Assembly: GCA_002104905.1 (NCBI GenBank)
Contig: MCFE01000574.1
Coordinates: forward strand, 1 to 56,767
Length of the DNA stretch: 56,767 nucleotides
Source of the DNA: Basidiobolus meristosporus CBS 931.73
Taxonomy: Eukaryota; Fungi; Basidiobolomycota
Reading direction: 5' to 3'
Both the position numbers and the translations under genes were made by a program. This document shows positions 8,528-56,767 of the stretch, piece by piece. The notes under the pieces are model-generated. The model was given only the letters and a program-made list of their open reading frames with translations, had not been told where the DNA came from and made no database searches. Position 1 is the stretch's first letter, and each line of letters begins with the position of its first letter.

Positions 8528-8540
8528 GTTTATGAGCCCC
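8528..8540 (+). other. Copia primer-binding site
   Basis: GTTTATGAGCCC lies immediately after the LTR and resembles the GGTTATG(A/G)GCCC site of copia elements primed by an internal tRNA-iMet fragment. Confidence 0.65.
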
Positions 8541-30469: not shown

Positions 30470-30600
30470 AGTGCGCGCTGTAAGCTGATAAGCTGAGCCA
30501 CCCGGGAGAATCAATGCTCTTTGCAAGCAGGATAGTTGAGCTACTCCGGAGAAGCAATGCGCTTTGTGAACTGATAAGTGCAGCCACCCGGGAGAACTAG
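30470..30600. promoter_or_regulatory. Upstream ~42-bp imperfect repeat cluster with GATAAG motifs (also ~26640-26765, 34447-34530, 38690-38770, 42855-42975)
   Basis: gcgct..g..(a/g)ctgataag..gagccacccggga occurs 2-3 times about 300-430 bp upstream of each short gene, next to CCAATCG boxes. The regulatory role is inferred. Confidence 0.5.
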
Positions 30601-37100: not shown

Positions 37101-37494
37101 ATTGCCCATATCATGCTTACTGATACTGGAACAAGCATTACCACTGCTAATGTCGGGAGAGTGATCGCGATAAGTGGAATCAATAAGAAGGCTCAATGAA
37201 AGTACTTTTTTCACTATATGCTTAGGTAATAAAGACTTGACTCATAGACTAATCGCAACATGATGAGCATAACTGTAATGGTTATTATTGAGGTCAAAAT
37301 TGGGGTTGACGTAGAGATAATCGAATTCAGTACTCTTTTGATTGTAAGAATTGGCGGTTCTGTTACATAACTTTCTGACCACTTACCATTGGTTGCACAG
37401 TAATGATGTAATCAATGTTGAGGTAGGAACAGTTCTTATTTCTAGAATACTTTATTTTGGAGTATCACTACTACTGATATGATTTCTGGTATTT

Positions 37495-38385
37495 TTAGTT
37501 TACACTACTGGAAGTGGTATTCGCTACCAGCATGTTGCAAGCATTCGAAGTTGTATATCCCGAGTGGCCGCAGACTTTGTTGCTTGGACAACACGACAGA
37601 TGAGGATTAAGATAGTCACCAGTTGGGCAAACAAAGGTGTATGGACTGTCTTCGGATTCGCAGTAGTATCCACCGTAATTGCTATTACAAGCGTTCAAAG
37701 CGTTTTGGTACACGCTTTCGGGAAAGTCCCCACACCCTTCTCTAACATCCTCTTTTTTCACATTGCACCCATTGCTTGTTAGTGAGATGCCCACATGGCC
37801 GCATACATTTCCACTATCACAACATTCGGTGTCAACGCTTGAAGTTTCGGAATTGCAAACTAATTTGAAGGGGCTATATGCCGAAGGGCAGTAGACACCA
37901 CCACTGCCAATAGCGTTGCAGATGCTTACAGCGCTCTGAAACTCCTCTTGCGAAGGCTTTGCTGAGCAATCTTTCTTGCTGGATCCTGAACTTGAGGTCG
38001 GCTCCCAGTATTGTTGGCATAGCTCAGGTATGTTATCAACATTTACGCCTGGATTGCCATTCATATCACACGGAGTGGAATCCCAAAGTCCCACTTCCAA
38101 GTTGGTGTATGTATTTGGGGGGCAACATGTCAGTTGGGCCGGACTTGCTCCATCACATTCGTAATAGTAGACGCCGTTTGTTTCAGGCACCCAGAAGTTG
38201 GTAGCGCCGGCATTGAGATAGCTGTTGCGACATTTCTCATTGGCAACTTCTTGGGATGTTGCCATCGAGAAAAATGCAGCTCTGTCACCGTTGAATGTAG
38301 GGTGCGCATTTGCGAGTAGTTCACTGCTGGTTGTAAGTGCTAGCACAAGTGCCGACAATCTCATAAAAGAATCGGTGAGCATCAT
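37495..38385 (-). CDS. Secreted Cys-rich protein, 296 aa (copy 5)
   Basis: Intact ORF with the same C-terminus as copy 2 (VANTTSSSVN). Confidence 0.92.
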   Translation of the reverse strand: MMLTDSFMRLSALVLALTTSSELLANAHPTFNGDRAAFFSMATSQEVANEKCRNSYLNAGATNFWVPETNGVYYYECDGASPAQLTCCPPNTYTNLEVGLWDSTPCDMNGNPGVNVDNIPELCQQYWEPTSSSGSSKKDCSAKPSQEEFQSAVSICNAIGSGGVYCPSAYSPFKLVCNSETSSVDTECCDSGNVCGHVGISLTSNGCNVKKEDVREGCGDFPESVYQNALNACNSNYGGYYCESEDSPYTFVCPTGDYLNPHLSCCPSNKVCGHSGYTTSNACNMLVANTTSSSVN

Positions 38386-41300
38386 AGTTAATAATAGATA
38401 TATCCAGGCATTTCATTCATCTATATACTAGATACAACATCGCATCAGGACAATCTTTTGGCCTTCGATATCTTTGTGGATAGCCCTGTGACCGCTGTTG
38501 ATTGACTAAATTTCTGGTTTGCAGGGTATCTTTTCTTGATTTGTATCTCGATGTATCCGATTGGAATGTGTCTGTTCTTGATATATATCTAGATGCATCC
38601 GATTGGAATGTATCTTTTGGTGATATATATCTAGATTCAATAAGTGGGCACAAGTAATGGCCGATTGGCAGCCATTCGGGAAAATCAGTGCGCGCTGTAA
38701 GCTGATAAGCTGAGCCACCCGGGAGAATCAATGCGTGTTGTAAGCTGATCAGTAGAGCCACCCGGGAGATCTAGTTGTGATGAATTGTACAATCTCAAAA
38801 ATGTGGGATATATACGGTATTCATATAACTTCCTTAATGAATTGCATGTTGAATATGAGATCCTAATTCGACTTCAACCCTGGTTGAAAATAGATACCTC
38901 AATTAAATCACAATGGGCGGGAAATTATTTTTATTCTGGTAAAACTTGCTCAACATAAAATAGCTCCGCTATGGGGTTTTGTAGGAATTATCTGAATTGT
39001 ATCCAGCTCATGGCTGATCCAATCAAAAGGGTTACCAATTTCTGTTTTACTAGATCCATATTCCTAATTGGTCCCATAATCATGCACTCCTACTATAAAT
39101 GGTTGCAATGGCGCTCAAGCGAATCATCAGTGATGCTAATAGAATAAAGGGGATATTCGAGATTGGAATGTACCAATATTCGAAATGTTGGTCTCGTGAA
39201 GCCAACCCTACTTTCCGTCAATGATTGTGGCTTCTTGAGTCCAGGATATTTTTGATCTGGAGAACCAACCATTCGATCACTCCGCCTCTAGAATGACTTG
39301 TTGCTATTGGCCGGCTATATTTGTAAACCTTAAGATCTAATTAATCTAGATACATATACTACCGCGCTTACCTAAATTGTAAACCCGGAGAGGTTAATTA
39401 AGCCTTATTAATAAGATCGGTCTGTGCGTTGAAGGAGGCGGAGGGTCCCCGATTTCTTCAACAAGTAGTATTACCTAGAATATTAGTCACTATGAAGTTC
39501 TTATATCAAGCTCTAGTGGTTTCAGGATAATCATGAGCATTGAAGAAGTTTCTAATCTAATTTTGCTCAGAACTTCTCAAAACATGCCTTTTCCATAAGC
39601 CACAACCCTGCTTAAAAGATCTAGGCCAACCAAGCTCCATCATATGAAGAATAGTGAGCTTTCTCAATAATATTCATCGAATTTCTATATTGATAAAGCT
39701 ACATTACGGGTGATATGAATACTGTTTGCAAAATATGGGACAAAGCCGTTACTGGTGATCAGAACATGCCAATATGATTAAAAAAGCGAAACAAATGTCA
39801 GTATGAATCCGGAAAGACATTTAGCCAGTAAGAAATTACTTCACACACTAGATTTTTATATTTCGTGATCATGATTATGTCATGCAACTATTGATGATCT
39901 ACTTCTATTAACATACTTTCGTTCATGTTAAATGTTGCGTTATACATATAAATTCTGAGAGGCGATGCCCCTCCACTCCGACAATGCGTCCATCTCTTCG
40001 TCGTGCTTGCCTTTGGCGATTATCGTGTCGGAGCTAGTCGAACCTGATTAGGCCATAATCACGTAAAGGACATTAATTTCACAAACGATCTCCTCAATTG
40101 CTAAATCCATTGAAATTCAGATACATTGTAGTTACTCCTACGGGTTCATTTTTGAGTTATCCTATTTAATTGCCACTTTGTTCCTACGTGTGGACTACTA
40201 AATACTCTCTCATATAGCTCCCGGATGACATATGCAAGTGAAGTCGTTGTCAATTTTGATCTCCAACATGCACTGTGGATAGATTATGGTATCAAATCTC
40301 TGCACACACACCATCGATCTGAGCTTAGCCTTTCAGCGATCTATCTGAAGCTATTCAGCTATTACGTGTTGCATTATCCGCACCGGGGAAACTTTTAGAT
40401 CGATTCTGCCAAAATAAAAGCTTACATTCTCAATGGAACACATAGTGATGACTTTATCGACAAAATATGGCAGCATTTCTAAAATATCATATTGGAAACT
40501 TCATAGCCTATAAACGTATGGTTTTCGTAAGTGCAGGTCTTAATTGCTGCTAGAGTTGTTGCTTTGATTACACCAGGGTTTGAGCTACACAAACCTCGAA
40601 GCATGCTTGAGAATTAATGTCAAACAAAGTCGGATATTATCATATGCACCTTGGCCATACTAGATTATTGCTCAGCATTACCAAGATCATTATTTAATCA
40701 CTGAATCGTATAACTGTACTCAATTGTCCACATTATGGTTAAGCTTTCGATACAAATTAGGCGCCTGTTTCTAATTACCCAAAAGATTATATGGTGTTTG
40801 CTCCATCCGTCCCTCGGCAAAATGAGCTTCCCGTTGAACAATTACCAACAAAAGAGATCCTGATTTCACCACTAACAAAAGAGCCATAGCCACCTCTGCA
40901 ATTTCTTAACTAGAAGGGAAGGAGTATGGAACGGCAGATATATAAAGTGAAGATCCTTCTCCAGTAGTAAAGAAACTCTTCAGGGACATCAGAGGGAGAT
41001 AAAAGGAAGGGAAACTCACCAGTTGGCAAACTTTTGATTCTAACTGAATGATATCAAACTGCCTCATAAAATAAAGAAGCCAGCAAGTCCATACCCTGTC
41101 TCAAGGCAAATATAAATACAGGGTCTTCTGTAGCTCTTCAGCAGAATCAAATTCATGCAACTTAAAAAGTGGCGGCTGTTACACTAAATATTGGCAATGT
41201 TACACTCGTTGCGATAGCCATTGTTTGAGTTACCACTGCCAGAGTCACCCATGTCATGCTTACTGATACTGGAATGATCATTACCATTGCTAATGTCGGA

Positions 41301-41657
41301 AGAGTGATCATGATTAGTGAATTCAATGCTAAGGCTCAATGAGAGTACTGGTTTCACTAATGGTTTAAGTAACAGTGATCGCGACTGAGATTAATCAGAA
41401 CATTTTTAGGTTAGTGTACTCATTTCATCTGTGACAGTTGTTATCAATATCGAAATTGGAGTCGACGTCGATGGAATCATATTTAATGCTATTGTGATTG
41501 TACGAATTATCATTAACGGTTCCGTTGCATAACTTTCTGACCACTTTGAGTTTCTTACACAGTAATGCTGTAATCAATGCTGATGTAGGAACAGTTGTTA
41601 TTTCAAGAATACTTTATTTTGGAGTCTCGTTACAACTCGTAGTGTCAGCGTTATTTT

Positions 41658-42548
41658 CTAATTTACAATACTGGAGGTTGTATCCGATACAAGCATATTG
41701 CAAACATTCGAGGCTGTATATCCCGAGTGGCCGCAGACTTTGTTGCTAGGACAACACGACAGATGAGGATTTAGATAGTCACCAGTTGGGCAAACAAAGG
41801 TGTATGGACTGTCTTCGGATTCGCAGTAGTATCCACCGTAATTGCTATTACAAGCGTTCAAAGCGTTTTGGTACACGCTTTCGGGAAAGTCCCCACACCC
41901 TTCTCTAACATCCTCTTTTTTTACGTTGCACCCATTGCTTGTTAGTGAGATGCCCACATGGCCGCATACATCTCCACTATCACAACATTCGGTGTCAACG
42001 CTTGAAGTTGCGGAATTGCAAACTAATTTGAAGGGGCTATATGCCGAAGGGCAGTAGACACCACCACTGCCCATGTCGTTGCAGATGCTTAGAGCACTTT
42101 GTAATTCCTCTTGCGAAGGTTTTGCTGAACAACCTTTCTTGCTGGATCTTGGACTTGAGGTCGGCTCCCAGTATTGTTGGCATAGCTCAGGTATGTTATC
42201 AACATTTACGCCTGGATTGCCATTCATATCACACGGAGTGGAATCCCAAAGTCCCACTTCCAAGTTGGTGTATGTATTTGAGGAGCAACATGTCAGTTGG
42301 GCTGGACTTGCTCCATCACATTCGTAATAGTAGACGCCGTTTGTTACAGGAACCCAGTAGTTAGATGCGCCGGCATTGAGATAGCTATTGAGGCATTGCT
42401 CATTGGCAACTTTTTGCGATGTTTCCATGGAAAAAAATGCAGCTCTATCGTAGTTGACCGTAGGGTGCGCATTTGCGCGTGGTGCACTGCTGGTTGTAAG
42501 TGCTAGCACAAGTGCTGACAATCTCATAAAAGAATTGGTAAACATCAT
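41658..42548 (-). CDS. Secreted Cys-rich protein, 296 aa (copy 6, mosaic)
   Basis: Intact ORF. The N-terminal part is diverged and partly like the long gene (FFSMETSQ, GASNYWVPV, CCSSNTY), while the C-terminal half matches copies 2-5. Confidence 0.92.
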   Translation of the reverse strand: MMFTNSFMRLSALVLALTTSSAPRANAHPTVNYDRAAFFSMETSQKVANEQCLNSYLNAGASNYWVPVTNGVYYYECDGASPAQLTCCSSNTYTNLEVGLWDSTPCDMNGNPGVNVDNIPELCQQYWEPTSSPRSSKKGCSAKPSQEELQSALSICNDMGSGGVYCPSAYSPFKLVCNSATSSVDTECCDSGDVCGHVGISLTSNGCNVKKEDVREGCGDFPESVYQNALNACNSNYGGYYCESEDSPYTFVCPTGDYLNPHLSCCPSNKVCGHSGYTASNVCNMLVSDTTSSIVN

Positions 42549-43512
42549 AGTTAATAGTAGATATTCCTGGGCATTTTATTCATTTATAAACTAGATGCAA
42601 CATCGTATCAGGACAATCTTTTGGCCTTCGATATCTTTGCGGATAGCCCTGTGACCGCTGTTGATTGACTAAATTTCTGGTTTGCAGGGTATCTTTTCTT
42701 GATTTGTATCTCAATGTATCCGATTGGAATGTGTCTGTTCTTGATATAAATCTAGATGCATCTGATTAGAATGTATCTTTTGGGGATATATGTCTAGATT
42801 CAATAATTGGGCACAAGTAAAGGCCGATTGACAGCAATTCGAGAGAATCAGTGCGCGCTGTAAGCTGATAAGCTGAGCCACCCGGGAAAATCCATGCTCT
42901 TTGTAAACAGGATAGTTGAGCCACTCCGTAGAAGCAATGCGCTTTGTGGGCTGATAAGTTGAGCCACCCGGGAGAACTAGTTGTGAACGACAGTGCAACA
43001 ATCTCAAACTGGGGACATATACGGTATTCGTACTGCTTCCCGAAGGAACTCATTATTGAAAACGAGGTCGTAATTCGGCTTCAAACCCGGTTGCTAATAA
43101 ATACCTCAAATAAGTTACCAAGGACCAGTAAATATTCTTATGCAGGTAAAATCGCTAAACCAACTAGAAGGGTCACCAATTTCAGTGTTACTAGATCCAT
43201 ATTCCTAATTAGTCCCGTAATTAATGCACTCCAGCTATAAAGGGATATTATGGCGCTCAAGCAAATCACCAGTAATGCTTATTGAGAACGGGGCTATAGT
43301 CGCGATGGGAATGACCTAATAGTTAAGATGTTGGTCATAGGAAGCTAACCCGTTATTTGTATAATGCTTATGGCTTAACGCATCCTCCTGATTGTTGATC
43401 TGAAAAGCCAAACATTTTATTACTCCGCTTCTTGAGAGATATGGATAAACCATCTGCCTCGTTTACCTAGATTGTAAACCATGTGTAGCTAATTAAGCCT
43501 TAATCAAAAAAT

Positions 43513-44020
43513 GGGTTAGAGGGGAGACAGTCACCAACAGGTGAAATCTTTATTTCAGTTGAAACAAAGAAGCCAGCGCTACTGCTGTAGCTTGGATACA
43601 AGAGTGTGTAGCTGAGGGGAATTTGTAGGTAAGTTAATAAGAAGTGATGATAGTTCTTCAGTGCTCAAGACACTGTTCAGTGGGAAGGGGGGTAGCAAGA
43701 GAGGTAATTTGTAGGTAAGTTAACAAGGAGAGATGATAGCTCTTCAGTGCTCAAGACACTGTTCAGTGGGAAGGGGGGTAGCAAGAGAGGTAAGAATGAT
43801 TTGTGAACAACATAAATAAATGGAAGATGATATGGATTAATATTCATCATAAAGTGAGTGTGCTACTTCAGATATTGCTGCCAAAGGTCTGTCAAGTGCT
43901 TCAGGTAGGCCAGCTTGGGCTTTTCTGACTGCAGAATATAATGAGCAAACTTCTAGACATCTGGATCTCCAAGTATAGTTCTCCAGCAGGAGCCAGGTGT
44001 AGCATGGTGAGTGCTCTTCC
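43513..44020 (-). mobile_element. 5'-truncated non-LTR retrotransposon, family A (3' ~500 bp with an internal duplication)
   Basis: Starts gggttagaggggagacagtcaccaacaggtgaaatc and is homologous to 46727-47140. It has a duplicated segment at ~43700-43790 and is followed by a copia LTR. Confidence 0.88.
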
Positions 44021-46098
44021 TGTTGTAAGAGTCTTGGAGATATTGGAAGTGATTGGGTGGACAAGTCGATTATGTGGTTTTCACTTAATGATATATTGAA
44101 TGTAAAAGTAGTATTTATACTTTTACATGGCCTTGGCATAACAAACACGTAGAATAGACTTAGAAAGGTCCCAAGAACATGTGTGCAAAGTTTGGGGCTG
44201 TTTAGACAACTTTGAGAATTCTGATGATTTGGGTACCTGATATTTTGGTGAAGATATTCCAAGTAAATCCTGACATTGACTTTGGTCACTATTCACTAAG
44301 ATTGGGTAGGAAATGATCTAGGTGACTAAGTTAGGTGAATGCTTAGGTGGAATTACAAGTTTTTACAACACTCCCACTCAACTAAATGTTCATACTGACC
44401 AGTCCTAATTTTGACCTAAGATATTCAAAGCTGTCCCTAGCTAATGGTTTGGTAAATATGTCTGCAGTCATTTCATCAGTAGGACAGTCAACTAATTTAA
44501 GTAAGTTATTCACTAAAGCTTCACATATGAAATGATGTCTAATACCTATGTGCTTAGTTCTGGCATGAAAAGTTGGATTTCTACCTAATTGTACACATGC
44601 TACATTATCTTGAAATAGAGTAATAGGCGTTTTTTGACATAAGCCTAAGTCTTGAAAAAGCTTCTTTAGCCTCATGGCTTCTTTTGTAGCCTCACAGGCT
44701 GCCATATACTCTGCTTCTGTGGTGGAAAGAGCTATGGTAGGTTGTTTTCTAGAATTCCATGAAATTGCTCCTTTACAGTAAAGAAAGGTGTATTGTGTGG
44801 TGGATCTTCTGTCTTCTAAACTTTGTCCCCAAATAGCATCAGTATATCCCACAAGATCCTGTTTGGAATCCTTATAGGTGTACCTTAAGGAGATATCAGC
44901 AGTTCCTTTTAGGTATCTAAATATCTGCTTAACTGTTGCAATATGATCAGATCCATAGATCTGATTATGCTGACTGACAACTCCCACTGAATGCAAGATA
45001 TCTGGACGTGTTCTGAGCATGATACACATCAGACTGCTGGCCATGGATTGATAAGGAAAGTCTGGGCTTTTAGATGGCACCAAGCTCTCCTGAATTAGGT
45101 TACGTTTTGACCAAGTTGTGGTTTGTCTCTGTTGAGGTAGCTGCCGGTTTACAGTCTTCCATTTTGTACTTCTTTAGTATATCTCAAATATACTTGGACT
45201 GGCTTAAGGTGATAGTCTGGGTACTTCTTTCTATGGAGAACTCTATATTTAAGTAGTAACTGAGTTTGCCTAGATTGGACATCTTGAACTCCTTGGATTG
45301 GCTGGTTTTAGTTTCTTCCAATGTTCATAGGTTATTGGCGGCTAAAATAAGATCATCCACATATAGAGCTAATAAAACTGGATTTGCTCTATCTGGCTTA
45401 TAGTATATACTGTAGTCATCATTACTCCTTTTGAAGCTCAAAGATTCCAAATAAGAATCTATTTTGCAATTCCAGGCTCTTGGTGATTGATTGAGTCCAT
45501 ATAGAGATTATTTAAGCTTGCAGACCAAATGGGGGTTATTTTGCTCAACAAACCCATCAGGCTGGTCCATATACACATCCTCATCAGGTTTTCCATTCAA
45601 AAATGCAGCTTTTACATCCATTTGATGTATAAAAAACTTATATTTGGCTATAATAGCCAATATTAATCTGTTGGGATTAAACTTGGCTAACAGTGCAAAG
45701 GTTTCAGTTTAGGCAAGTCCGTTTGTTTCGGAGTATCCTTTGGCTACTAGTCTTTCTTTGTATCTTTCAGTTGTACCATCAGCCTTGTATTTTGTCTTAA
45801 AGAACCATCTGCATCCAATTGATTTTTGGTTGATTTGTAATTTGACTAAGCCCTAAGTTTGATTTTCTATTGGGGCCTTATATTCCTCAGTCATTGCAGA
45901 TCTCCAAAACTTTGTCTGAGGGCTATTTAGGGCCTCTTTCACAGTCTGAGGCTCACCAATATGGACTGAATAGGCATAGACTAAGTTTGTATCCTCATTG
46001 ATATAGTAATTAGGGCTATTTCTTGTCCAATTTGATCTCCGGGCATTTGATATTGAAATGATTACTTCTGGGATATTCCTGGGCACTGATTCTGGCTG
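44021..46098 (-). mobile_element. Truncated Ty1/copia element (3' LTR 44021-44370, PPT, RNase H, RT), same family as 8179-13598
   Basis: ORF 44382-45083 (RNase H, ALSTTEAEY...FTKPLARD) and ORF 45853-46122 closely match copy 1. The sequence stops abruptly at QPESV. Confidence 0.93.
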
Positions 46099-46780
46099 GG
46101 TTATGGGGGAGACAGTAACCAACAGGTGAAATCTTTATTTCAGTTGAAACAAAGAAGCCAGCACTACTGTTGTAGCTTTGATACAAGAGTGTGTAGCTGA
46201 GGGGAATTTGTAGGTAAGTTAATAAGAAGTGATGATAGTTCTTCAGTGCTCAAGACACTGTTCAGTGGGAAGGGGGTAGCAAGAGAGATAAGAATAACTT
46301 GTGCACAACATTAATGAGGGGAATGTGATAAGGATTGATATTCATCATAAAGGGAGTGTGCTGCTGCAGATATTGCTGCCAAAGGTCTGTCAAGTACTTC
46401 AGGTAGACCAGCTTGGGTTTTTCTGACTGCAGAATATAATGAGCAAACTTCTTGACTTCAGGATCTCCCAGTATAGCTCTCCAGCAGGAGCCAGGTGTAG
46501 TGTGGTGTGTTCTTAGGGTTAGGGGTTAGGGGGGAGACAGTCACCAACAGGTGAAATCTTTATTTCAGCTGAAACAAAGAAGCCAGCGCTACTGTTGTAG
46601 CTTTCATACAAGAGTGTGTAGCTGAGGGGAATTTGTAGATAAGTTAATAAGAAGTGATGATAGTTCTTCAGTGCTCAAGACACTGTTCAGTTAGGGGGGA
46701 GACAGTCACCAACAGGGTTAGGGGGGAGACAGTCACCAACTGGTGAAATCTTTATTTCAGTTGAAACAAAGAAGCCAGTG
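46099..46780 (-). mobile_element. Stack of 5'-truncated family-A LINE 3' ends separated by TTAG(n) tracts
   Basis: Units start at 46110, 46534, 46700 and 46727. They are preceded respectively by GGTTATGGGGG, TTAGGGTTAGGGGTTAGGGGG, TTAGGGGGG and GTTAGGGGGG. Confidence 0.9.
46513..46533 (+). repeat. Telomere-like tract TTAGGG-TTAGGGG-TTAGGGGG
   Basis: Read directly between a truncated LINE copy (...gtgtgttc) and the 3' end of the next copy. Confidence 0.85.
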
Positions 46781-48030
46781 CTACTGTTGTAGCTTTGATA
46801 CAAGAGTGTGTAGCTGAGGGGAATTTGCAGGTAAGTTAATAAGAAGTGATGATAGTTCTTCAGTGCTCAAGACACTGTTGAGTGGGAAGGGGGGTAGCAA
46901 GAGAGGTAAGAATGACTTGTGAACAACATTAATGAGGGGAATGTGATAAGGATTGATATTCATCATAAAGGGAGTGTGCTGCTGCAGATATTGCTGCCAA
47001 AGGTCTGTCAAGTACTTCAGGTAGGCCAGCTTGGGTTTTTCTGACTGCAAAATAAATTCAGCAAACTTCTTGACTTCAGGATCTCCAAGTATAGTTCTCC
47101 AGCAGGAGCCAGGTGTTGTGTGGTGTGTTCTCTTCCAGGCCTTAATCAGTGGGTTGGTGCAGTTGTGAAGTCTGAGGTATAATCTGGTTCTAAGGTAGAG
47201 AAGTCTGATCTTATAGGGCATAAACCCAAAAGCACCAAGAATAGCATGTCTGTAGGGGCATTCAGGCAAATGAGGCACCAAGGAGGTAATGCACCATACT
47301 GCAAACTTGTCAAGCTTAGTGCAGTCTCTAGAAGTAAGAGAGAGAAGTGGTAAGCCAAATTCCAGGACAGGGAAGACAAACTGCTTGAGTAGAAGGAGGC
47401 AGCTGGGAGCTGAAGTTGTAGGAGGAGTAACAGCCAGTAGCTGGTGGAGTGCCTGTCTTGCCAGGATAATTCTCTTCTTCAGGTGTGCTCCAGAGTCTAG
47501 TCCAGTAGGAAGGAAAGGAAAGCCAAGATATGTAGCAGAAACCTGAGCAGGTAGAGTGAAGTTCTTCAAGTTGATGGGAGAGCCCAAAGATACTGTCTTT
47601 GCAATGGAAAGCTGGAGATTGTTCTTCTGCAGATACTGGTGGATGGTCTGGGAGTCTTGTTGCACATTGGAGGAGGATATTCTGATGTCATCAGCAAAGA
47701 GAGTAACCAGGCAGTCAGCTGAGAGTCTTGGGAAATCATTCAGGAAGATGGCAAACAGTATAGGACCAAGCACAGAGCCTTGAACCACTCCATTAGGAAC
47801 TGAGAACACAGCTGATTGCTCACTTGGGTGCAGAATTCTTGCTTGTTGATCCAGAAACAAAGACCTGACAAGGAGGGTGAGAGAGGTACTGGAGAAGCAT
47901 TGCAACTTGGACCAAAGCAGATTTCTGTCAACTGAATCAAAGGCCTTAGTAATATCAAACAGAACAGAGGGATACTTGCACTGGAGAGAGTGATCTTGGC
48001 TAAGTATGACTGCATATTCCAAGGAGAGGC
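46781..48030 (-). CDS. Non-LTR reverse transcriptase, C-terminal part (family A), cut at its 5' side by a gypsy LTR
   Basis: Open frame containing FDITKAFDSV, GVVQGSVLGP, LFADD and YLGFPF. The track's N-terminal MLMHN lies in LTR sequence. Confidence 0.9.
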
Positions 48031-51000
48031 TGTTGTGCATCAACATTTAAAACTTAGCCAATTTTACTCCGTTTGAAAATCTAGTACCCTAACTGATTTT
48101 CCCTAACCCAAACATAACAAATCCCAGTTACAGTTTATTTTATCCCACCTCAGAATCTATTTTTAGCTATCACACCTGGTCTATTTTCAAATGGTCATTA
48201 CGGTATCAACCTATCTGCCAAGCCTTCCCAGGTGATTAGTCATCTGAGAACTATCCAACCACGGTGCAGTTGCCAAGACATCAGTTGATTGATGATGAAA
48301 TTTTCATTTATCTTATGCACCTATGAACACCCAAATTTATCTCAATCAATCCAGTCTCTTGGCGCTTACTAAGTCAACTTGATCAGAAAAGTATAAATAA
48401 AGTTTACTGAACCTTTTGGTTTAGTGTGTGTCTCAACAAAATTAAGATTCTGTCTCAGCAAAAATAAGAATCCAACAATTCCGTTCTAGTTTCTATCCAA
48501 GCCTAGTATATCTAGTACTCCAAAGAACACCAAGCATAGCCTGCCTAGCAAACAAATATCATTGCCTTTATAGCCAACCCAGCTATATCCAAGACCAATA
48601 TTAGATCAGAATCTTTCTGCTAATATTTCCACCACTCTCTGACAATTCTAAGATTCTGCACTTAATTGTCCCTTTGGTTCAGTTAAACCATTCAAGAGTT
48701 TTAATACACTTTCTCTTGGATACAACATTTTTTTTGTTGAATTCCATTACATTCAGCCAATTAGAAGATGTCCTCAGCAGCAAGCAATCCAAACCTTTCC
48801 ATGTTGGAAGAGGCCAGAAGAAATCAGGAAGAACTTACTGAACAGCTTGAAAACATCATGCTTGAAAGAAATACCATGATGCTTGAGCACTCAAAGCTTG
48901 CCAAAACAAGATCTGATAATCACTGTAGAGATGAACTCCTTGAAGTTATATCCGGTTACTAAGATGAAATTGGAATAATTAAGGAAGCACTGGAGAATAT
49001 TGCCATAGTAATTGACAGCATTGAAAATCCGCCAAGCCTTGCTCTGCATCAGCCACCAAGAAGTCATGCCTTTGAGTCCTCCAGATCTACATCTCCTTCT
49101 AGACCTGCCCCGGTGGTTGTCCCAAGATCCTTGCCTGCTTATGCTGAAGGCACCAATGCCATCAAGAATCCAACTGAGTTTTTTTACAAGTTTAGTCACG
49201 TCTTAGCTGCACACCAGCTAGACCCTGACACCAACTGGGCTAGACTCCTGCCTCTCTGTCTCACAATGCAAGATGATGACTGGGTTGAAGTGAACATTCC
49301 TTCCAATAGTACGTGGAAAATTGCCCAAAACCTCTTTTGCAGCCATTTTGAAGATCCTCTCAAGAAAGCACATCTGAACTGCGACTTATGGAAAACTAAA
49401 ATGCAAAAAGGTGAATCTGTGCAACACTTCTGTGATAGATTCCAAAGACAAATGAGATTAGCCGGAGTTAGTGATGATAATCCATTGCTTACTGCTCATT
49501 TTCTTTCAAACTTTTCACACCAGCTACAGAGCAATATTGCTATTGTCAAAGCATGTAACCCTGCACGTACCTATGACCAGATCTCAGAGATATGTACACT
49601 GGCAATCACCTTGACTGCAGCTGTTAGCCAGACTTCAGGCAACTCAACCCAATATCCCACAACAGCCGGAAAAGAGACCAGTCATGTGACCAAGAAGCAA
49701 TCAACCGCTACCAAGCACTGTGAGCTTCATGGAAAATGCTATCATACTACCAGTGAATGCAAAGGCATCACCAAGCAGTCAAACAAGTCAGGAAACACCG
49801 CAGAAAAGCAGCAAAACACCAAAACTGATAATCCATATGCTGATGACAAGTGCTTTAAATGTGGAAATATGGGACATAGATCACCTGCCTGTCCTGAGAA
49901 GAACTCCACACCATCAGCCAAAATTACCCAGATCCTTGATGATCATTCAGCCAATGATACAACAAGGTATGAAGAAGCATATAAAGAACTTACAGTTCAA
50001 GATTATCACAACCTCTTTGAGTTTCCGGCTAAAATTGCAACTGTTCAAGAAAAGAAGCAACCAATCACCCAGCTCAAAGCCATAGAAGTGCCACTCACCC
50101 TCAATGGCCAATCATATGTAGCACTACTGGATACTGGATCATCCAACTCTATTGTATCACCCAATGTAGTCAGAGAACTCAATTTGGAGATAGAAAAACG
50201 TCCAGGAAAAATCATTCTTGCAGCTAAGGATCTCTCAGCCCCAAGAATTGGCATTACCAACCCAATCAACATACATTGTGGCTCAGTAACCATAATCCAT
50301 CAGATGGAAGTGATTGACATACCAGATGGACCTCAGGTAGTCATTGGTCTGGACACCTTCAGCAAACTTGGCTTTCACATAGGCGGACTACCAGTTTCCT
50401 ATCCAGGAATCACTAAATCTCAGCCACTCATAATGGATCAAATCCCAGAGATTATCTCATCCCAACCAGAAGAAGAAGAGTTAACCCCAACTTTTCAAGA
50501 ATATTCTCAATCAGTCAAATTGGATATTCAGCCGGCCATAGAGAGAAATCAGGCCATTCCAAGGAACAGCTTCTGCACCATCCCAGAATCCATTGTTACA
50601 CTAGAGACCCCACCTGGTGAGTCAACATGGAGGAGGCAATACCCAATTCCGCATTCATGTCAACACTTAGTTGATGAGATAGTCCAAAAATGGGCTGACA
50701 ATGGAATTATCACTCAAGCCCCTGTCAACACAACATTCAACAGCCCTTTGACGCTTGCACCAAAGAAAGATGCTGATGGAAATCTAACCTTGAAGAGACC
50801 CTTTTTGGACCCCAGACCTCTGAACAAGCTTCTCCAAGATGACAAGTTTCCAATTCCAAGAATCCAAGATATCTTTTCCGCACTATCAGGAGCAAAAGTA
50901 TTCTCCAAGTTGGACTTGAAGGATGCATATCACCGATTCCAGATCCATCCTGATCACCAGCATAAGACTGCCTTAACTTGGAATAATATGCAATGGATGT

Positions 51001-52583
51001 TTCAGGGAGCTCCCTTTGGCCTAAAGACACTTACCAGCAAGTTTCAGAGAGTCATGACTATAATACTCAAGAATGCACCATACGCATTGGTATTTGTTGA
51101 TGATGTCATCATATTTTCCACTAACTGAGATGATCATGCAGCCCATGTCACTGATGTAATCAACAGACTGACAACTGCTGGACTGATTCTCAATGCTGAA
51201 AAGTGCAGTTTTGCCCCCTCAAAATCAATCTACTTGGATTTATAGTCACACCAGCTGGCCACCAAGTTAGATCCTTTCAAACTGGTCAATATCCCAGAAT
51301 GGCCAAAACCCACTAGCGCCAAGCAACTTCAACATTATCTTGGAGTATTCAACTATTTCAGGGAACACATACCACTCATGTCCTCATTGAGTGCCCCTTT
51401 AGATGCATTACGCCATAGCCCTGATCTCACCTCAGCCTGGAACAAGACTCATGACCAAGCCTTTGAGTCACTCTGCCAACTGCTTCCACAAGCACCCACC
51501 TTATCCTACCCAGACTTTACTAAGCCCTTTGTTGTTGCTACGGATGCATCTAATGTTGGGTTAGGGGCAGTCCTCTATCAAGATGAAGACCAAAATCCGC
51601 CTCACTGGCTCTCTTTCCAAGCCAGGTCCCTACAACCTGCTGAGAGAAACTACTCTGCTACCAAGAAGGAGCTACTTGCCATAGTCTTTGCCTTGAAGAA
51701 GTTTCATCAGTATCTATGGGGTAATCCTTTTACCTTGTACACTGACCACCAAGCCCTTGTCTATATCCACACTCAGAAGACTCTGACTCCAATGCTTACC
51801 AACTGGCTTGATACTCTACTTGATTATGAATATACAGTTATTCATCGCCCAGGAATTCTCAACATCCTTCCTGACCACCTGTCAAGACTTTTTCCAACTT
51901 CACCTTGGGAGGGACATGTGATTACTGATGTAATCAGTAAACTCTCTACAACTTCCAAAATAATTCCTCAACTGGATTCAGCAACTTGGAAAATCCCACC
52001 TGAAGAACAAAGGAAAACATTGATACAGAGGAGTCATTTACTTGGCCACTTTGGAGCTGACACACTTATGAAGAAGCTACACTCTGATGGATATCACTGG
52101 CCAAATATCAAAGTTGACTGCTTAGAATTTGTCAAGTCGTGCAGAGAATGTCAACTTTATAATATCAGCCGCCATGGATTTCATCCTTTGAGCCCCATCC
52201 ATGCAAGCCTTCCTATGGATCATATTGCAATTGATCTAGCTGGACCTTTCACCACTAGTGATGATGGTAATCACTACCTCTTTGTCATTGTGGATGTCTG
52301 CACACGTTTTGTCTACCTCAAAGCTATTCCAGACAAGTATGCTGCCACTATTGCACAAGAACTATTCAAGCTCTTCTGCCTTTTTGGATTCCCTAAGGTC
52401 ATTCAATTGGATAATGGAACAGAATTTGTGAATCACGTGATCAAAGCCTTTGCAGAATAGCGCCATTGATCACCGTCTGATCACTCCATATCATCCAAAG
52501 CTATGGACTGCTGAAGACATGTTCAGACTCAGTGAACATCATCAGAATCTATCAAAGGTATCAAGAGAATTGGACAAGTACAT
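48031..52583 (+). mobile_element. Ty3/gypsy chromovirus copy 2: 5' LTR (48031-48727) plus gag-pol, truncated in integrase
   Basis: Gag starts at 48768, has an in-frame TAA at 48960 and continues into ORF 49113-51128 (CFKCGNMGHRSPAC knuckle, LLDTGS protease, RT FVDD). ORF 51378-52460 covers RNase H, the GHFG zinc finger, IAIDLAGP and DNGTEF. It diverges from copy 1 after gacaagtacat and has no 3' LTR. Confidence 0.93.
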
Positions 52584-52625
52584 CGACTGTACAATAGACT
52601 GTTCTGTGGATAGTGCCAATAGTGC

Positions 52626-52785
52626 TAGGGGGAGACAGTCACCAACAGTGAAATCTTTATTTCAATTGAAACAAAGAGCAGCGCTACTGTTGTAGCTTTG
52701 ATACAAGAGTGTGTAGCTGAGGAATTTGTAGTAGTTAATAAGAAGTGATGATAGTTTCAGTGCTCAAGACACTGTTCAGTGGGAG
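52626..52785 (-). mobile_element. Short family-A LINE 3' end
   Basis: taggggg-agacagtcaccaac... is homologous to 46727-46880, with several 1-nt deletions. Confidence 0.85.
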
Positions 52786-52876
52786 GGGTAGGGGGAGGGA
52801 AAGTCACCAAGTTGGTGAAATCTTTATTTGAGTTAAGAACTAATCTAAGTACAAATAAAGAAGCCAATTAAGAGGT

Positions 52877-55731
52877 CTAGAACCTCTCTAATAAGTAATC
52901 TAATCTATGTTTTGTTTCATCTCTAATGTTTGTTTCAATAAAGTAAAGCTCATCAGGGGTAAATATAAAATTCAGGGGTTTTGGGGGAAGTACAAATTGT
53001 AGATGTTTCTGATCAATATAATCCAAGACTGGAACCCAGCCTGGGATTAGGTGTAGTAGGAAAGGTGTGTGGACTTGTAAGTAGCTCTGCCACATAGATC
53101 TTAGATGGTCCTGAGCCAGTAGTCTTGGTTTCTCAGCTTTTTGAAGTTTTGAAGCAAGCTCTGTTACTACAGCAGAGCCAACCAGGGTGTGCCAGCAAGA
53201 AGATTTCAGGGAGGAGTTAGATTGAAGCCATTAGTTTGATGGAGGGGTTATGTGATTTCTGAAGTTTGACTAGGAAGGAAGCCCGGAGATAGATCATTCG
53301 GATTTGGTATGGGTAGAACCCAAAGGCTCCATTAGTTGCATGGATATAGGGAGATACTGGAAGATAAGGTACCAAGGATCTGATACACTGATGGAGAAAT
53401 TTATCCAGGCGGTGAAGTTCTCTGGAGGTTAGGGGTATAATGTGGAGACCAAATTCAAGTACCGGCAGCACATACTGCTTCAGAAGTATAGGGATCTTTT
53501 GAATTGGAGTGTCTGGAGTGACTACTACCAGAAGCTTTTTGAGAGCCTGTTGGGCAAGACGGATCCTATTATTCAGGTGGAGCTTTGAGTCAATCCCATG
53601 TTGACAAAACGGCAGACCTAGATATATTGCAGTTTGTTGTGGCAGAATGCTAGTGTTCTGTATAGTTGTAGTGCATCCAATTGGGACTGTCTTGGAAATT
53701 GAGAGTGAGAGGTTGTTGGCAGCCAAGTACTTCTCAATGATGGCAGTGTCTGCTATGGGATTAGGAGTAGCAATCTTGATATCATCCGCATAGAGAGTTA
53801 GTAGTGGATAGGGAGAGTCTGGTGAGGGGCCTTTTGGAAATAAAGGAAAGTCATGTAGGAATATCACAAATAGTAAGGGACCTAGTACAGATCCTTGGAC
53901 TACTCCATTTGGAACCTCATAAGTCTCTGATGTGACAACTTGGATGCAAAATTTTGGCTGAGTTCTCACAAAATAGAGAACGTACAAGAAGGGTCATTGG
54001 TAGTGTGGTAACTGCTAATAGCTTTCTCCAAAGCAGAGCTCTGTCCACAGAGTCAAAGGCTTTAGTAATGTCAAACAGAATGGTTGGCAATGAGAATTGA
54101 AGTGAATGATCATGGCTTAGCACTACAGCCATATCCAAGGAGAGTTTGGGCAAGAAGCCAAACTGAGAAGGATGGAATGGATATAGTTGAGATTGCAAGG
54201 ATCTTGCTATCATAAGCTCAAAGATTTTCCGGCAGGTTGGTAGGAGTGAAACTGGCCGGTAAGAACCTGGGAGTGAGTGTTTCCCCTTCCCTTTGTATAA
54301 GGGTATTACATTTGCCTGTGACCAGGCCTTTGGGGTAGTCAATTGTTGGGCACAGATAGAGTAGAATGGGAGAAGTAAGTGACTCATTTTGGAGTAGCAC
54401 ACCTGGAGTAGATCGTAGGTAATCAAGTCATGTCCAGGTGCAGTATTTGCAGGAAGCTTCTTTAAAATTTTCTCCAGAAGCTTTGCTGAAACCACAATTG
54501 GAGATGTTGGACTGGTAGATATGTTACCAGTATGGTAGAAAGGAGGAGTGGGATGCATCGGTTGAATCAAAGAATATAGGGGCCAGTTTGTCTGGTGATG
54601 GTATACTCCTTGCTTGGGGTCTCATGGCTTTGTATACTCTTGATATGGACCTTGTGGTGGCATTCATATTTACTAAGGGCAAGGTATCCATGATATGAGC
54701 CCATAATCTAGTATGCTCAGTGATCTGTAGTGACTTGGAGTAGGAGATTGCGCTTTCCAGGAGGTTCTGTGTTTTTGGGTTAGGGAAACATAGGTAGCTG
54801 GAATTTAAGGCAGAAATGATGGATTTCCATTTAAGTTGGTTTGCAGATGGCTTTTGGTAGGACTTGGTGGGCAGGGCCAGACAGCCAGTGATTATGATGA
54901 AATGCTGGTAAAATAGCCATAATGCATTTATATCATCACAAATCCATGCAGGTAAGCTGGGAAATGCATATTCTGTAAGCAAGGATAGGTAGTTGGCAAA
55001 GTCCTGTGTCCTGTGATACTGAAGCTTTGGCTGGCAGGATTGTAAACGGCTGAAGAAGGGTGCCAATTGGTAGGGTTTTTCTGGCAGAAATGATAATGTG
55101 TATTGGCTTGTGATCAGATTTCTCTAGTGAACCACAGCTGATATCCTCTGGAATGCTTGTAACCTGGTGGATGTACTGTAAGGCAGCTGGAGTAGCTGTT
55201 ACCCAGTCAACACAACGTTGAGCTTGCTGAGTGTTTACAGTGACCAGATGGTTTTGTCGGAGGAACTTTGTAAAGTGCTCCTCTCGGGTTCTAAGTCTGG
55301 ATGAAATAGTGGTGATATTTTCAGGGTGGGGAATATTTATATCTCCCACTACCATACAAGGGATTGATGAGCTGTTGAATGAATTCTGATGTGGCCAAGA
55401 AAATTGCCAGTGTTATGGAGTTAGACAGAGATGGAGGGAGATAGATAATAATGGCTACTATAGTTGGAAGTGTTAGAGCATAGCAGTAATACTCATAGAT
55501 GATGGATACATTTGCTGAGGGTGCAAGCTTAGAAGATGAAAGAGCAACAAGTGCCATTGAGTGAGCTGGAAATTTTGGGTGAGCAGATGAATATGCATTC
55601 AGTCTAGAGGGAAGTTTTGGCAACTTAACATCAATTAGTAGGAGCAAGGAATATTCCTTTTTCAGTAAGTTTTCTAATTCAGCTACAGTTGGAGTGATGG
55701 AGTTGCAATTGAGTAAGAGTATGTTCTGTAG
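52877..55731 (-). pseudogene. LINE ORF2 (apurinic-type endonuclease plus reverse transcriptase), disrupted
   Basis: Overlapping ORFs 55321-55647, 54936-55355, 54524-55066, 53917-54570, 53217-53987 and 52877-53095 carry the APE and RT motifs in the expected order. Confidence 0.88.
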
Positions 55732-56767
55732 TCAGGCAGACTCTGAGGTTGCCTGTTCCTGCTGAAACTCTTGCACTGCCCTTTGTAAATTTCCAGAATT
55801 ATTCCACAACTCTTCAAATGGAGCTTGCGTAATGTCTTTCAGGATTCTAATTGCTTCCTCTTTCAAGAAGTAGGCCACATCATAGGTTGGAGCCTGTTTC
55901 TTAATGGCAGCAAAGAAAGCCATAATTGCCATGTGAGCTGGGGGCTTGTTGAATATTCCTGGCTCAGTGTCCATTGACTCTGGTGGAATGATTGTGAATT
56001 TGGTAGGCACCCAGTTTAGATTTTTTGCCAGATACTTAGTCAATGCAGTGGAGAAGTTTCTGTCTACAATCATTTCTAGGATCTTTCCTCTTCTCCAAGC
56101 TAGGTTAACAATTTTTGAAGTGTCAATATTTAGAGAGCGGAATGTATGTCTGATGTTTGATATAGTAGTCCATGGAACATTGGCAAAGTATAGCAAGGAC
56201 CAATTCTGGAGCTGAGGTAAGTTTGCTGGAGGCTTATAGGTAGACTTCCTGGCAGGTTGTGTGGTAGGCTTTAGTGTTTCCAAGTTAGCAAGTTGTGGTT
56301 GAGACTTTTTGGAATTACGTATGACTTTGGAAAGAATTCTGCCAGCAACTGTGTCAGGAATGTTAGTACTCATTGCTGGTGCAGGGCCTGGCTCCTGGTA
56401 CTGCTTTTGTAGAATACTTGAGTATGTCTCTTTTTGTTTTCCTTTATCCAATGTGCTATGCCTTGGAATGGGATTTTGGGGAATAGAGAATTCAGGTATC
56501 AACTCTGGGGTCTGGTGATTGTCCAACATTGTTGCTTGAGCTTCCAGCTTTTCCTCTAAGATTTGAACTCTCTGCTTAAGCTCATCATTTGATGCTATAA
56601 GTGTTGCATTGTTTGGAGCCAGGTCAGGTGTTGAGTTATGAAGGCAGGTTGAGCAGCGTTCTAACTCCTTGGTTTGGTCATCCAACTTTTCTTCTAAGGT
56701 TTGAACCCTCAATTTGAGTGCACCATTTGAGGTTAGAAGCTCCAAGTTATCAGCCTGCAACTTCTTT
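55732..56767 (-). CDS. LINE ORF1 (coiled-coil N-terminus; probably 5'-partial)
   Basis: A frame of >=342 aa directly upstream of ORF2. It contains a duplicated heptad segment (LLTSNGALKLRVQTLEEKLD / LIASNDELKQRVQILEEKLE). The track start is not an ATG and the frame reaches the window edge. Confidence 0.75.
   Translation of the reverse strand, partial: KKLQADNLELLTSNGALKLRVQTLEEKLDDQTKELERCSTCLHNSTPDLAPNNATLIASNDELKQRVQILEEKLEAQATMLDNHQTPELIPEFSIPQNPIPRHSTLDKGKQKETYSSILQKQYQEPGPAPAMSTNIPDTVAGRILSKVIRNSKKSQPQLANLETLKPTTQPARKSTYKPPANLPQLQNWSLLYFANVPWTTISNIRHTFRSLNIDTSKIVNLAWRRGKILEMIVDRNFSTALTKYLAKNLNWVPTKFTIIPPESMDTEPGIFNKPPAHMAIMAFFAAIKKQAPTYDVAYFLKEEAIRILKDITQAPFEELWNNSGNLQRAVQEFQQEQATSESA

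Follow-up and report, generated by a model that had tools for sequence, protein, structure and literature searches.

Stacked LINE 3' ends with telomere-repeat tails at a contig end of Basidiobolus meristosporus, a candidate chromosome-end capping system

What process leaves a series of LINEs in a single orientation, each joined through its 3' end to telomere-like sequence and several of them to genes or retrotransposons that stop short? This question is raised by the right end of contig MCFE01000574.1 of Basidiobolus meristosporus CBS 931.73 (assembly GCA_002104905.1), the whole of which (56,767 nucleotides; hereafter the window) was analysed. A preliminary description of this DNA had proposed that the region from 43.5 kb onwards records successive breaks of a chromosome end, each capped by a retrotransposon. 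Here we describe the anatomy of the region, its counterparts in the genome and the element of which it is composed, and weigh this proposal against three alternatives.

Anatomy of the LINE pile and of the DNA that it interrupts

Reading of the individual junctions bore out seven LINE 3' ends, all on the (-) strand. On the (+) strand the order is upstream DNA, telomere-like units and then GGGGGGAGACAGTCACCAACAGGTGAAATCTTTATTT, the reverse complement of the LINE 3' end. The tracts are GGTTAGAGGGG at 43513 (J1), GGTTATGGGGG at 46099, TTAGGGTTAGGGGTTAGGGGGG at 46513, TTAGGGGGG at 46691, GGTTAGGGGGG at 46716/7, TAGGGGG at 52626 and GGGGTAGGGGGAGGGAAAGTCACC at 52786, the last belonging to a second family, LINE-B. 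The right end of the contig is a one-way pile of LINEs in which each tail is a scrap of telomere repeat and not poly(A). Of the TTAG(3-6)-like tract first described before each 3' end, at least three Gs in every case are the LINE's own terminal C-run, so that the tract truly added amounts to 0–3 units. The 'GGTAG' at 52786 is internal LINE-A sequence, and that junction may therefore be without any telomere unit.

The six inner elements belong to LINE-A and, like LINE-B, lie on the (-) strand. Copy 1 (43513..44020), a 508-bp 3' part with tail GGTTAGAGGGG, contains a duplication of 86 bp. At 6.7 % divergence from the young consensus it is the oldest copy of the stack, and it is broken by the 3' LTR of a copia element. 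Copy 2 (46099..46512; 414 bp, tail GGTTATGGGGG, 2.9 % diverged) sits on the cut copia and is followed by copy 3 (46513..46690; 178 bp, three-unit tail, 1.9 % diverged). Copy 4 (46691..46716) is a 26-nt stub, made up of no more than the tail and the opening bases of the 3' tag, and is re-capped directly by the tail of copy 5 (46717..48030). This 1.3-kb copy, 1.0 % diverged, retains the C-terminal half of ORF2 including part of the reverse transcriptase (RT; Pfam RVT_1, E 4e-18) and is broken by a gypsy 5' LTR at 48031. Copy 6 (52626..52785; 160 bp, tail TAGGGGG, indel-rich) sits on the cut gypsy. LINE-B (52786..56767) then runs, frameshifted, from its 3' tag to the contig end, with an RT at 53217-54570, an APE-like piece at 54936-55355 and a coiled-coil ORF1-like ORF at 55732-56760; it shares ~68 % nucleotide identity with LINE-A in the RT region.

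Comparison with sister copies confirmed that three tails adjoin cut DNA, namely a gene-array spacer, a copia cut in mid-pol and a gypsy cut in mid-integrase. The array is tandem, with a period of 4.1-4.2 kb, and its truncated last unit (41011..43512, (-) strand; 296-aa ORF at 41658-42548, (-) strand) loses its match to the sister units at ~43505-43512, in the spacer, while the units at 36867-39292, 32804-34840 and 28975-31239 run on past this point. The array's five 296-aa ORFs had no Pfam or Atlas relative. The copia fragment (44021..46098, (-) strand) comprises a complete 3' LTR (44021-44368; end ...CAACA at 44021) and the RT/RNase H side of pol, including RVT_2; its LTR end, ...CTCTTACAACA, adjoins LINE-A sequence. 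It is 88.6 % identical to an intact copy at 10785-12737, which goes on as AACCATGG where the fragment is cut at 46098 and its 5' half goes missing. Loose ends of read unitigs at 46098 likewise show other copia copies running into AACCATGG. The gypsy (48031..52625, (+) strand) has a 5' LTR at ~48031-48727, gag-PR-RT at 49113-51128 and RNase H-integrase at 51378-52460 (Pfam), and is colinear with a full copy at 14709-20793 up to ~19460. It is cut at 52625, just past a partial rve match (profile positions 4-87 of 102, ending at 52460), and lacks the remaining integrase and the 3' LTR; loose unitig ends at 48030 show other copies going on as LINE-A. Copia, gypsy and array were all sought to the right of their cuts and none was found, in line with the earlier claim that the interrupted flanks do not resume, and the window contained neither a target-site duplication nor a resumed flank. 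Since the copia and the gypsy have complete termini inside earlier LINE copies, each would have integrated first and lost its distal half later. Elsewhere in the genome, a gypsy is cut at L003:850, and L016:1428 is capped where its paralogue, L003:4530, goes on. The pile in the window looks like a record of repeated tip loss and re-capping of one chromosome end.

Genome-wide placement, age order and read support

A 36-mer taken from the end of LINE-A was found at 865 places in the genome (790 forward, 75 reverse) versus none for the reversed control, more than chance would give. The preliminary description predicted enrichment at contig ends with uniform polarity, as opposed to dispersed copies, and this is what we found among the best 99 LINE-A ORF2 matches: 97 lie near contig ends with the 5' end pointing outward, 88 of them a few kb from a right contig end and nine, reversed, within 11 kb of a left end. 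The two exceptions (C613, C781) are reversed and away from contig ends. The telomere repeat is TTAGGG, related to the tracts as anticipated, and arrays of it (190-240 bp, ~35 units) terminate C1, C2, C21 and C22, immediately beyond such stacks and 0.2-2.7 kb past the last LINE tag. A search for TERT returned a Telomerase_RBD match above the cut-off at C935:173109-173423. Telomerase-type arrays still cap chromosome ends beyond the LINE stacks; MCFE01000574.1 itself has no terminal TTAGGG array, which counts against the end-capping explanation.

Within the window, substitution divergence from the young consensus falls outward, from 6.7 % in copy 1 through 2.9 % in copy 2 and 1.9 % in copy 3 to 1.0 % in copy 5 (Fisher p = 0.014 for copy 1 versus 2, 0.008 for 2 versus 5 and 2e-9 for 1 versus 5); copy 6 falls outside this gradient (2.6 %, n=154, indel-rich). 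Together with the LTR elements nested in earlier LINE copies, this gradient supports the proposed succession of cut-and-cap events with the distal side to the right. Cut ends could also be mimicked, without terminal loss, by interior LINE insertions with large target-site deletions or by ectopic recombination or gene conversion between subtelomeres. L1 is known for insertions that delete target sequence, the subtelomeric paralogues L003 and L016 share 96 % identity, and the two reversed, non-terminal copies would fit such a history. Yet seven events of one orientation would have had to fall within 13 kb, with every 5' end followed by the next tail, and this explanation is at odds with the terminal, outward-pointing placement of 97/99 best ORF2 matches and with divergence that falls outward in copies 1, 2, 3 and 5; nor was any LINE copy seen with resumed flanks. 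We regard this explanation as quite improbable.

With at least 865 near-identical copies of LINE-A in the genome, it had also to be considered that a long-read assembly might join high-copy repeats into chimeras, the more so as indels abound in the final 4.5 kb of the contig and the read check, made on Logan contigs of one sample, covered J1 alone among the junctions. J1 is present in independent short-read unitigs of two runs, which bridge it with 0 differences at a single-copy depth of ~145-150, which speaks against a misassembly at this junction. Junctions of like types were also found as joints in reads, in 18 other loci and in other samples. An assembly artefact is accordingly a very remote prospect.

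The LINE-A element, its tails and how they may be primed

LINE-A is a young, high-copy LINE, family members being 0.1-0.7 % diverged with intact 922-aa ORF2 frames. The full element encodes a coiled-coil ORF1 and an ORF2 in which a nuclease of the APE fold is combined with an L1-like RT. Its ~110-nt 3' UTR closes with AAATAAAGATTTCACC-loop-GGTGA, a C-run and, as a rule, a single C-strand telomere unit (...C6 TAACCC). An A-run was found at 0/39 junctions examined. Such ...C6 TAACCC(TAA) 3' ends are common to several families in the genome and occur in other samples, and the LINE-A tag and tail also appear in relatives of 63 % amino-acid identity in five other public runs. The RT (RVT_1, E 2.5e-25) has human L1 ORF2p as its best solved homologue (E 1e-15), far ahead of R2. 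The N-terminal nuclease region gave a sub-threshold match to Pfam PF14529 (E 2e-4) and none to PDB sequences with phmmer; the APE fold was found through a structural search. Using an AlphaFold model (pLDDT 77.7, pTM 0.78), Foldseek returned ExoA, APE1, TRAS1 EN and L1 EN (E 1e-7, probability 1.0). The APE motifs N, Y, GD-N and SDH are intact, the fold is kept down to 48 % identity, and in LINE-A, P0001 and P0003 an Asp (LCLIDV) occupies the metal-binding Glu column. On the strength of this model the domain is assigned to the APE fold and predicted to be a nuclease. ORF1 of relatives gave weak coiled-coil-like matches and no zf-CCHC, and the C-terminal 284 aa of ORF2 had no Pfam match. Rfam returned no match, either for the window at gathering thresholds or, with E relaxed to as much as 1, for nine loci, which argues against a hammerhead or HDV-like ribozyme that would define the RNA 3' end.

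Tail length was tallied at 39 junctions from ~20 loci, a sample rather than the whole genome. Tracts of 0, 1, 2, 3, 4 and 5 units were counted at about 6, 20, 7, 2, 3 and 1 junctions, giving a mode of 1; the modal junction, N|GGGTTA followed by a G-run, was independent of the upstream sequence. Stubs of 10, 26 and 39 nt each directly precede a new tail, and in another sample a C8TAA tail sits directly on the 5' end of a full-length LINE. As these stubs were re-capped at once, the RT can evidently restart on a non-telomeric DNA 3' end. Four reconstructed cut sites had no common telomere-like motif, and the gypsy contains a perfect GGTTAGGGG that was not used as a junction. A candidate APE target motif, GC 2-3 nt upstream in the four cut sites, was inconsistent with ~25 other upstream sequences and was dropped as post hoc.

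Conservation of the APE fold and its motifs suggests that a nuclease step matters, and this step could be a nick in the telomeric G-strand. In such a case LINE-A would act by site-specific target-primed reverse transcription like TRAS/SART: APE would nick telomerase-made TTAGGG, including short telomeres newly seeded on breaks, and the RNA tail would pair with the nicked repeat, the short tracts reflecting a bias towards very short arrays or towards the array base. The structural match to TRAS1 EN, the TRAS-like polarity (sense strand continuous with the C-strand), the TERT RBD and terminal arrays, and the 13/39 junctions with tracts of 2-5 units all agree with this; these longer tracts could be remnants of telomerase-made repeats and are counted against priming on free ends. 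SART1, moreover, works with as few as three units (PMC7265360). It also needs at least that many (PMC7265360), whereas 26/39 tracts hold one unit or less. No tract exceeds 5 units, as against ~35 in terminal arrays, random insertion into which would give five units or fewer at p ~0.17 per junction. Direct capping of a full-length 5' end and of stubs no longer than 10-39 nt, the absence of poly(A), cut sites without a telomere-like motif and the unused internal GGTTAGGGG are further difficulties, and we consider nicking of telomerase-made repeats an unlikely, if serious, account.

We favour, at a probability of roughly 60 %, the reading that 43.5–56.8 kb represents the proximal portion of a stack which the telomere-specialised APE-type LINEs LINE-A and LINE-B built at a chromosome end, the RT being primed on eroded or broken termini alongside telomerase. 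New copies would arise at the very tip of the chromosome, where the terminal DNA 3'-OH would prime on the 3' end of LINE RNA ending in C6UAACCC; an eroded telomere or a broken end might supply this terminus, as might the preceding copy in the form of nascent cDNA. The cDNA would lengthen the G-strand outward, and telomerase would then add a ~200-bp TTAGGG cap. In the window, the oldest, leftmost step would have been truncation of the gene array and capping by copy 1. Copia would then have inserted into copy 1, the end been lost back into copia and copy 2 added as a cap, followed by copies 3, 4 and 5. In the youngest step, at the right, gypsy would have entered copy 5, the end been lost into gypsy, and copy 6 and then LINE-B added. 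The retrotransposon end-capping first proposed is supported in part: position, polarity, flanks, the short tails, the TTAGGG repeat, the TERT RBD, J1 and age order all agree with it, and the RNA 3' end and priming on a G-overhang are inferred. Priming on free ends would dispense with an APE nick, and capping might benefit the host.

Comparison with known telomeric retroelements and significance

LINE-A resembles TRAS1/SART1 of Bombyx mori (R1 clade; also Tribolium and aphids), APE-type telomere LINEs that coexist with telomerase-type repeats, and shares the polarity of TRAS. TRAS/SART have poly(A), a fixed nucleotide inside (TTAGG)n and repeats on both sides, none of which applies to LINE-A; LINE-A differs further in its 0-5-unit tail (mode 1), in three window and two other junctions on non-telomeric cut DNA, in a coiled-coil ORF1 without a CCHC match and in its fungal host. 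With Drosophila HeT-A/TART/TAHRE (Jockey clade) it shares head-to-tail tip arrays with 5' ends outward, variable 5' truncation and addition onto broken, non-telomeric ends ('healing'). An APE domain is likewise present in TART and TAHRE (review PMC5537684). Drosophila has no telomerase and its elements end in oligo(A), in contrast to the TERT RBD, TTAGGG caps and telomere-unit tail found here.

A reverse-complement telomeric 3' stretch is shared with the EN-deficient Penelope-like elements (PLEs) Athena and Coprina, whose short repeats of this kind are thought to anneal to G-overhangs; they are terminal, coexist with telomerase and, in the case of Coprina, are found in fungi, as related in PMC8557442, citing Gladyshev and Arkhipova 2007. 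In these elements the RT is of the PLE type, an endonuclease is lacking and a hammerhead ribozyme lies beside the tail, whereas LINE-A has a LINE-type RT closest to L1 ORF2p, an APE fold and no Rfam ribozyme. Among fungi, MoTeR (Pyricularia), FoTeR (Fusarium) and Cnl1 (Cryptococcus) are telomere-embedded, TTAGGG-flanked non-LTR elements at unstable ends (PMC12857005, PMC7367193), and FoTeR 3' ends carry 3-7 units (PMC12857005); LINE-A mostly has a single unit, together with a hairpin tag that is conserved. All three belong to the CRE/SLACS clade with a restriction-like endonuclease instead of an N-terminal APE fold. The Zepp element of Chlorella carries poly(A) and is self-nesting. It is listed, along with Tx1-1_ACar of the anole, among APE-type or L1-like LINEs that gather in telomeric regions (PMC10088271). 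Neither is reported to have a telomere-unit tail, unlike LINE-A. Finally, endonuclease-independent L1 insertion at dysfunctional telomeres, reportedly described by Morrish et al. in 2007, is said to be a laboratory phenomenon of repair-deficient cells. There too an APE-type LINE RT primes on a free chromosome 3' end, but L1 is not a dedicated family whose tail resembles telomere sequence.

Retrotransposons that have specialised on telomeres have been described in a small number of lineages (Drosophila HTT, Bombyx TRAS/SART, rotifer and fungal EN-deficient PLEs, and CRE-type MoTeR/FoTeR), and the literature on Basidiobolus telomeres and on APE-type telomeric LINEs in fungi yielded no description of a system like this one. 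LINE-A joins features kept apart in the literature searched, an insect-like APE-type LINE and a telomere-complementary tail as in endonuclease-free PLEs, along with telomerase coexistence, an early-diverging fungal host, very young intact copies and occupancy of a few hundred ends. Readable cut-and-cap scars in a culturable organism make two long-standing questions directly testable: whether LINE RTs can service free chromosome ends in nature, and how retrotransposon telomeres could evolve out of telomerase telomeres. More tentatively, and as a combined proposal that we would on balance bet against, Basidiobolus may maintain an active guild of APE-type LINEs with dependent SINE-like elements as a second end-repair pathway beside telomerase. 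Their RNA, resembling a telomerase template, would terminate with a single C-strand unit of the telomere, their RT would extend any exposed chromosome 3' end without needing the element's own nuclease, and eroded or broken tips would be routinely re-capped at a few hundred ends of very small chromosomes. If true, this would represent a state between telomerase-only and Drosophila-type retrotransposon telomeres.

Junctions and truncated sequences on contig C895

The window covers all of contig C895, in an assembly of 89,489,060 bp and 1,366 contigs, and inspection of its sequence recovered all seven LINE 3′ ends that the preliminary description had placed there. On the plus strand, each junction runs from upstream DNA through 0–3 TTAGGG-like units into GGGGGGAGACAGTCACCAACAGGTGAAATCTTTATTT, the reverse complement of the LINE end ...AAATAAAGATTTCACCTGTTGGTGACTGTCTCCCCCC, and the G tract at every junction includes bases from the LINE's own terminal C-run. 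The claim that a telomere-like tract precedes every end held except perhaps at 52786, where LINE-B begins; since the 'GGTAG' there is internal LINE-A sequence, this junction may be without a telomere unit.

Cut sites were defined by self-BLAST and breakpoint alignments, using a nest of LTR elements at 8181–20793 as intact references for the cut copia and gypsy copies. This nest comprises a copia with IN and RT (5′ LTR 8181–8528), a second copia gag (13640–14140) and a full gypsy with both LTRs (14709–20793). The three truncations reported earlier were confirmed. At 43.5 kb, the last 4.1–4.2-kb unit of the gene array ends within its spacer at ~43505–43512, while its sister units extend further; at 46.1 kb, a minus-strand copia ends at 46098, where the intact copy continues with AACCATGG; and at 52.6 kb, a plus-strand gypsy ends at 52625, shortly past a partial integrase-core (rve) Pfam match ending at 52460. 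As had also been described, the interrupted sequences do not resume: none of the three was found again to the right in the window. The 3′ LTR end of the copia is complete (...CAACA) and adjoins LINE-A sequence at 44020/44021, and the gypsy 5′ LTR begins at 48031 within another LINE-A copy. As both LTR ends sit in LINE-A, we conclude that these elements integrated normally into older LINE copies and lost their outer halves afterwards.

In a read check confined to the 43513 junction, short-read unitigs from two runs spanned it with 0 differences at single-copy depth (~145–150). Misassembly of the junctions is a poor fit to these reads, to the polarity of the LINEs and to the age gradient described below, and we consider it highly improbable. 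The last 4.5 kb of the window (52400–56767) is full of one-base deletions, as is the gypsy tail; LINE-A copy 6 (52626) carries 9 in 163 nt, and LINE-B is broken into at least 6 frames. These deletions probably reflect poor consensus by the contig end, not decay.

The gene array itself (25240–43512) consists of five tandem units of 4.1–4.2 kb that are 83–89% identical, with partial units at 1504–2586 and 3871–4119. Each unit contains internal 42/43-bp tandem repeats and one 296-aa ORF, for which no relative was found in Pfam or the ESM Atlas. A 114-bp tandem repeat (175–1494; 11.6 copies, 89% identity) occupies the left contig end.

Placement and polarity across the genome

Placement was based on the 99 best LINE-A ORF2 matches, plotted against contig rank; the contig index was read as the lexicographic order of size-ranked names, with which known lengths agree. 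Minus-strand matches (88 of the 99) follow the right contig end from 345-kb to 8-kb contigs, a further 9 are on the plus strand at most 11 kb from left contig ends, and 2 are exceptions. Enrichment at contig ends with uniform polarity was therefore observed for 97 of these 99 best matches. The exceptions, C613:96664–97911 and C781:57974–59221 (both plus strand), are reversed copies distant from contig ends, and the one on C781 lies 8 kb inward of a normally oriented copy, head to head. They could mark ends that have undergone fusion or inversion, or else insertions away from the ends.

Genome-wide counts of (TTAGGG)4 were 7,958 forward and 88 reverse, and those of the LINE-A tag, its 3′-end sequence, were 790 and 75, respectively. 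Nearly all contigs are oriented from interior to telomere, which is probably assembler behaviour rather than biology. Contig breaks at repeats are insufficient alone as an explanation, since the LINEs keep one orientation with respect to the contig end.

The telomere repeat is related to TTAG(n), as anticipated: TTAGGG arrays of 190–240 bp form the right ends of contigs C1, C2, C21 and C22, 0.2–2.7 kb outward of the last LINE-A tag. A search for TERT gave a Telomerase_RBD match above the Pfam cut-off in this genome. C895 stops within LINE-B, without a terminal array, and its assignment as distal to the right is based on the genome-wide polarity of LINE-A. Contigs C291 (~157 kb) and C1312 (~173 kb) carry outward-facing LINE-A at each end, which makes them candidate complete tiny chromosomes. 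The telomere match count implies ~200–330 terminal arrays in 89.5 Mb, a number that points to a very large set of small chromosomes or to copies left unmerged.

LINE-A proteins and relatives

The LINE-A 3′ 36-mer is present in at least 865 copies in the genome, and ORF2 has more than 99 matches at 97–98% amino-acid identity, about one third of them with an intact 922-aa open frame; young copies lie 0.1–0.7% from their own consensus. ORF2 contains RVT_1, with human L1 ORF2p as the nearest solved structure, and its N-terminal 236 aa are predicted to adopt an AP-endonuclease fold (pLDDT 77.7). Foldseek matched this nuclease model to ExoA, APE1, TRAS1 EN and L1 EN (E ~1e-7), and relatives down to 48% identity retain the N, Y, GD-N and SDH motifs. 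In the column that holds the metal-binding Glu of APE-type nucleases (QE/SE/TE), the whole LINE-A family, including the ORF2 relatives P0001 and P0003, has Asp (LCLIDV); the LINE-A N-terminus with this motif is at 3540–4248 (minus strand) of locus L011.

Relatives of 48–80% identity are present in other public assemblies, with a coiled-coil ORF1 of 437–500 aa upstream of ORF2. A 63%-identical element, found in five runs (ERR14127404, ERR14042393, ERR14042384, ERR14656578 and ERR14042375), shares the 3′ tag, has the tail C5TAACCC(TAA) and is stacked on further tagged elements. Related elements with the shared tag and a telomere-unit tail are at L021:440–530, L021:5440–5665 and L022:4972–5075. 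One tail among the five-run relatives, C8TAA, adjoins a full-length 5′ end beginning GCAAATTGTGAATTT.

Proposed addition of copies at chromosome ends

Across 39 junctions, the proximal tract comprised 0–5 units with a mode of 1 (0/1/2/3/4/5 units in ~6/20/7/2/3/1 junctions), while terminal arrays have ~35. The commonest junction, N|GGGTTA followed by a G-run irrespective of upstream sequence, would fit an RNA 3′ end of ...C6UAACCC. Stubs of 10, 26 and 39 nt each directly precede a new tail, and in another sample a tail stands directly on a full-length 5′ end, indicating that the RT is able to begin copying from a DNA 3′ end that is not telomeric. Loss of sequence mid-element or mid-array with a LINE tail joined directly at the cut is also recurrent: in addition to the three cases in the window, a gypsy is cut at L003:850 (contig C1), and L016:1428 (contig C1296) is capped at a point where the L003 paralogue extends further. 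No telomere-like motif shared by the reconstructed cut sites was found, and the gypsy contains a perfect GGTTAGGGG in its interior that was not used. An AT-rich subtelomeric repeat is common to C1 and C1296 (L003:3600–4530 and L016:277–1428). This repeat is preceded by two TTAGGG units and has no hairpin tag of the usual kind; its C1296 copy ends at a cut capped by LINE-A.

The farther out a copy lies, the less it differs from the young consensus: 6.7% in copy 1 (43513), 2.9% in copy 2 (46099), 1.9% in copy 3 (46513) and 1.0% in copy 5 (46717; Fisher p = 0.014 for copy 1 versus 2 and 0.008 for copy 2 versus 5); copy 6, at 2.6% over 154 indel-rich nt, is uninformative for this gradient. Together, the tract lengths, stubs, recurrent capped cuts and outward-falling divergence favour addition at the tip over insertion into standing arrays. 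The proposed record of successive break-and-cap events, distal to the right, is supported by the three cases in the window, this divergence and the genome-wide polarity. Recombination between subtelomeres, or LINE insertion in the interior accompanied by deletions, is improbable, as either fits poorly with the polarity, age gradient and reads. A TRAS/SART-like APE nick within very short telomerase-made tracts is a plausible but less probable alternative: it would agree with the conservation of the nuclease domain and with the 2–5 units counted in 13 of the 39 tracts, but SART1 requires at least 3 telomere units (PMC7265360), more than most of these tracts contain.

We favour, with a probability of about 0.6, terminal, 3′-OH-primed reverse transcription working beside telomerase, in which the LINE RNA would end in ...C6UAACCC and the DNA 3′-OH of the chromosome tip would prime its copying. 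Closest in behaviour are Drosophila HeT-A/TART/TAHRE, with polar terminal arrays and healing of broken ends, and EN-deficient Penelope-like elements; the latter are described as having 3′ reverse-complement telomeric repeats to anneal to G-overhangs (PMC8557442). Unlike Drosophila, the Basidiobolus system has telomerase, and in contrast to Penelope-like elements it has a LINE RT and a predicted APE fold, with no Rfam ribozyme match in the window at gathering thresholds or in nine loci at E up to 1. TRAS/SART-type APE telomeric LINEs are nearest in protein kind, whereas LINE-A has neither poly(A) nor a need for flanking arrays. In fungi, the telomeric elements on record to date, MoTeR, FoTeR and Cnl1, belong to the CRE clade with a restriction-like nuclease, and FoTeR 3′ ends carry 3–7 terminal units (PMC12857005). 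We found no published description of the Basidiobolus system in the literature on Basidiobolus telomeres or fungal APE-type telomeric LINEs. Both the priming mechanism and the suggested function as a healing system are plausible proposals, and the host might gain from such LINE capping.
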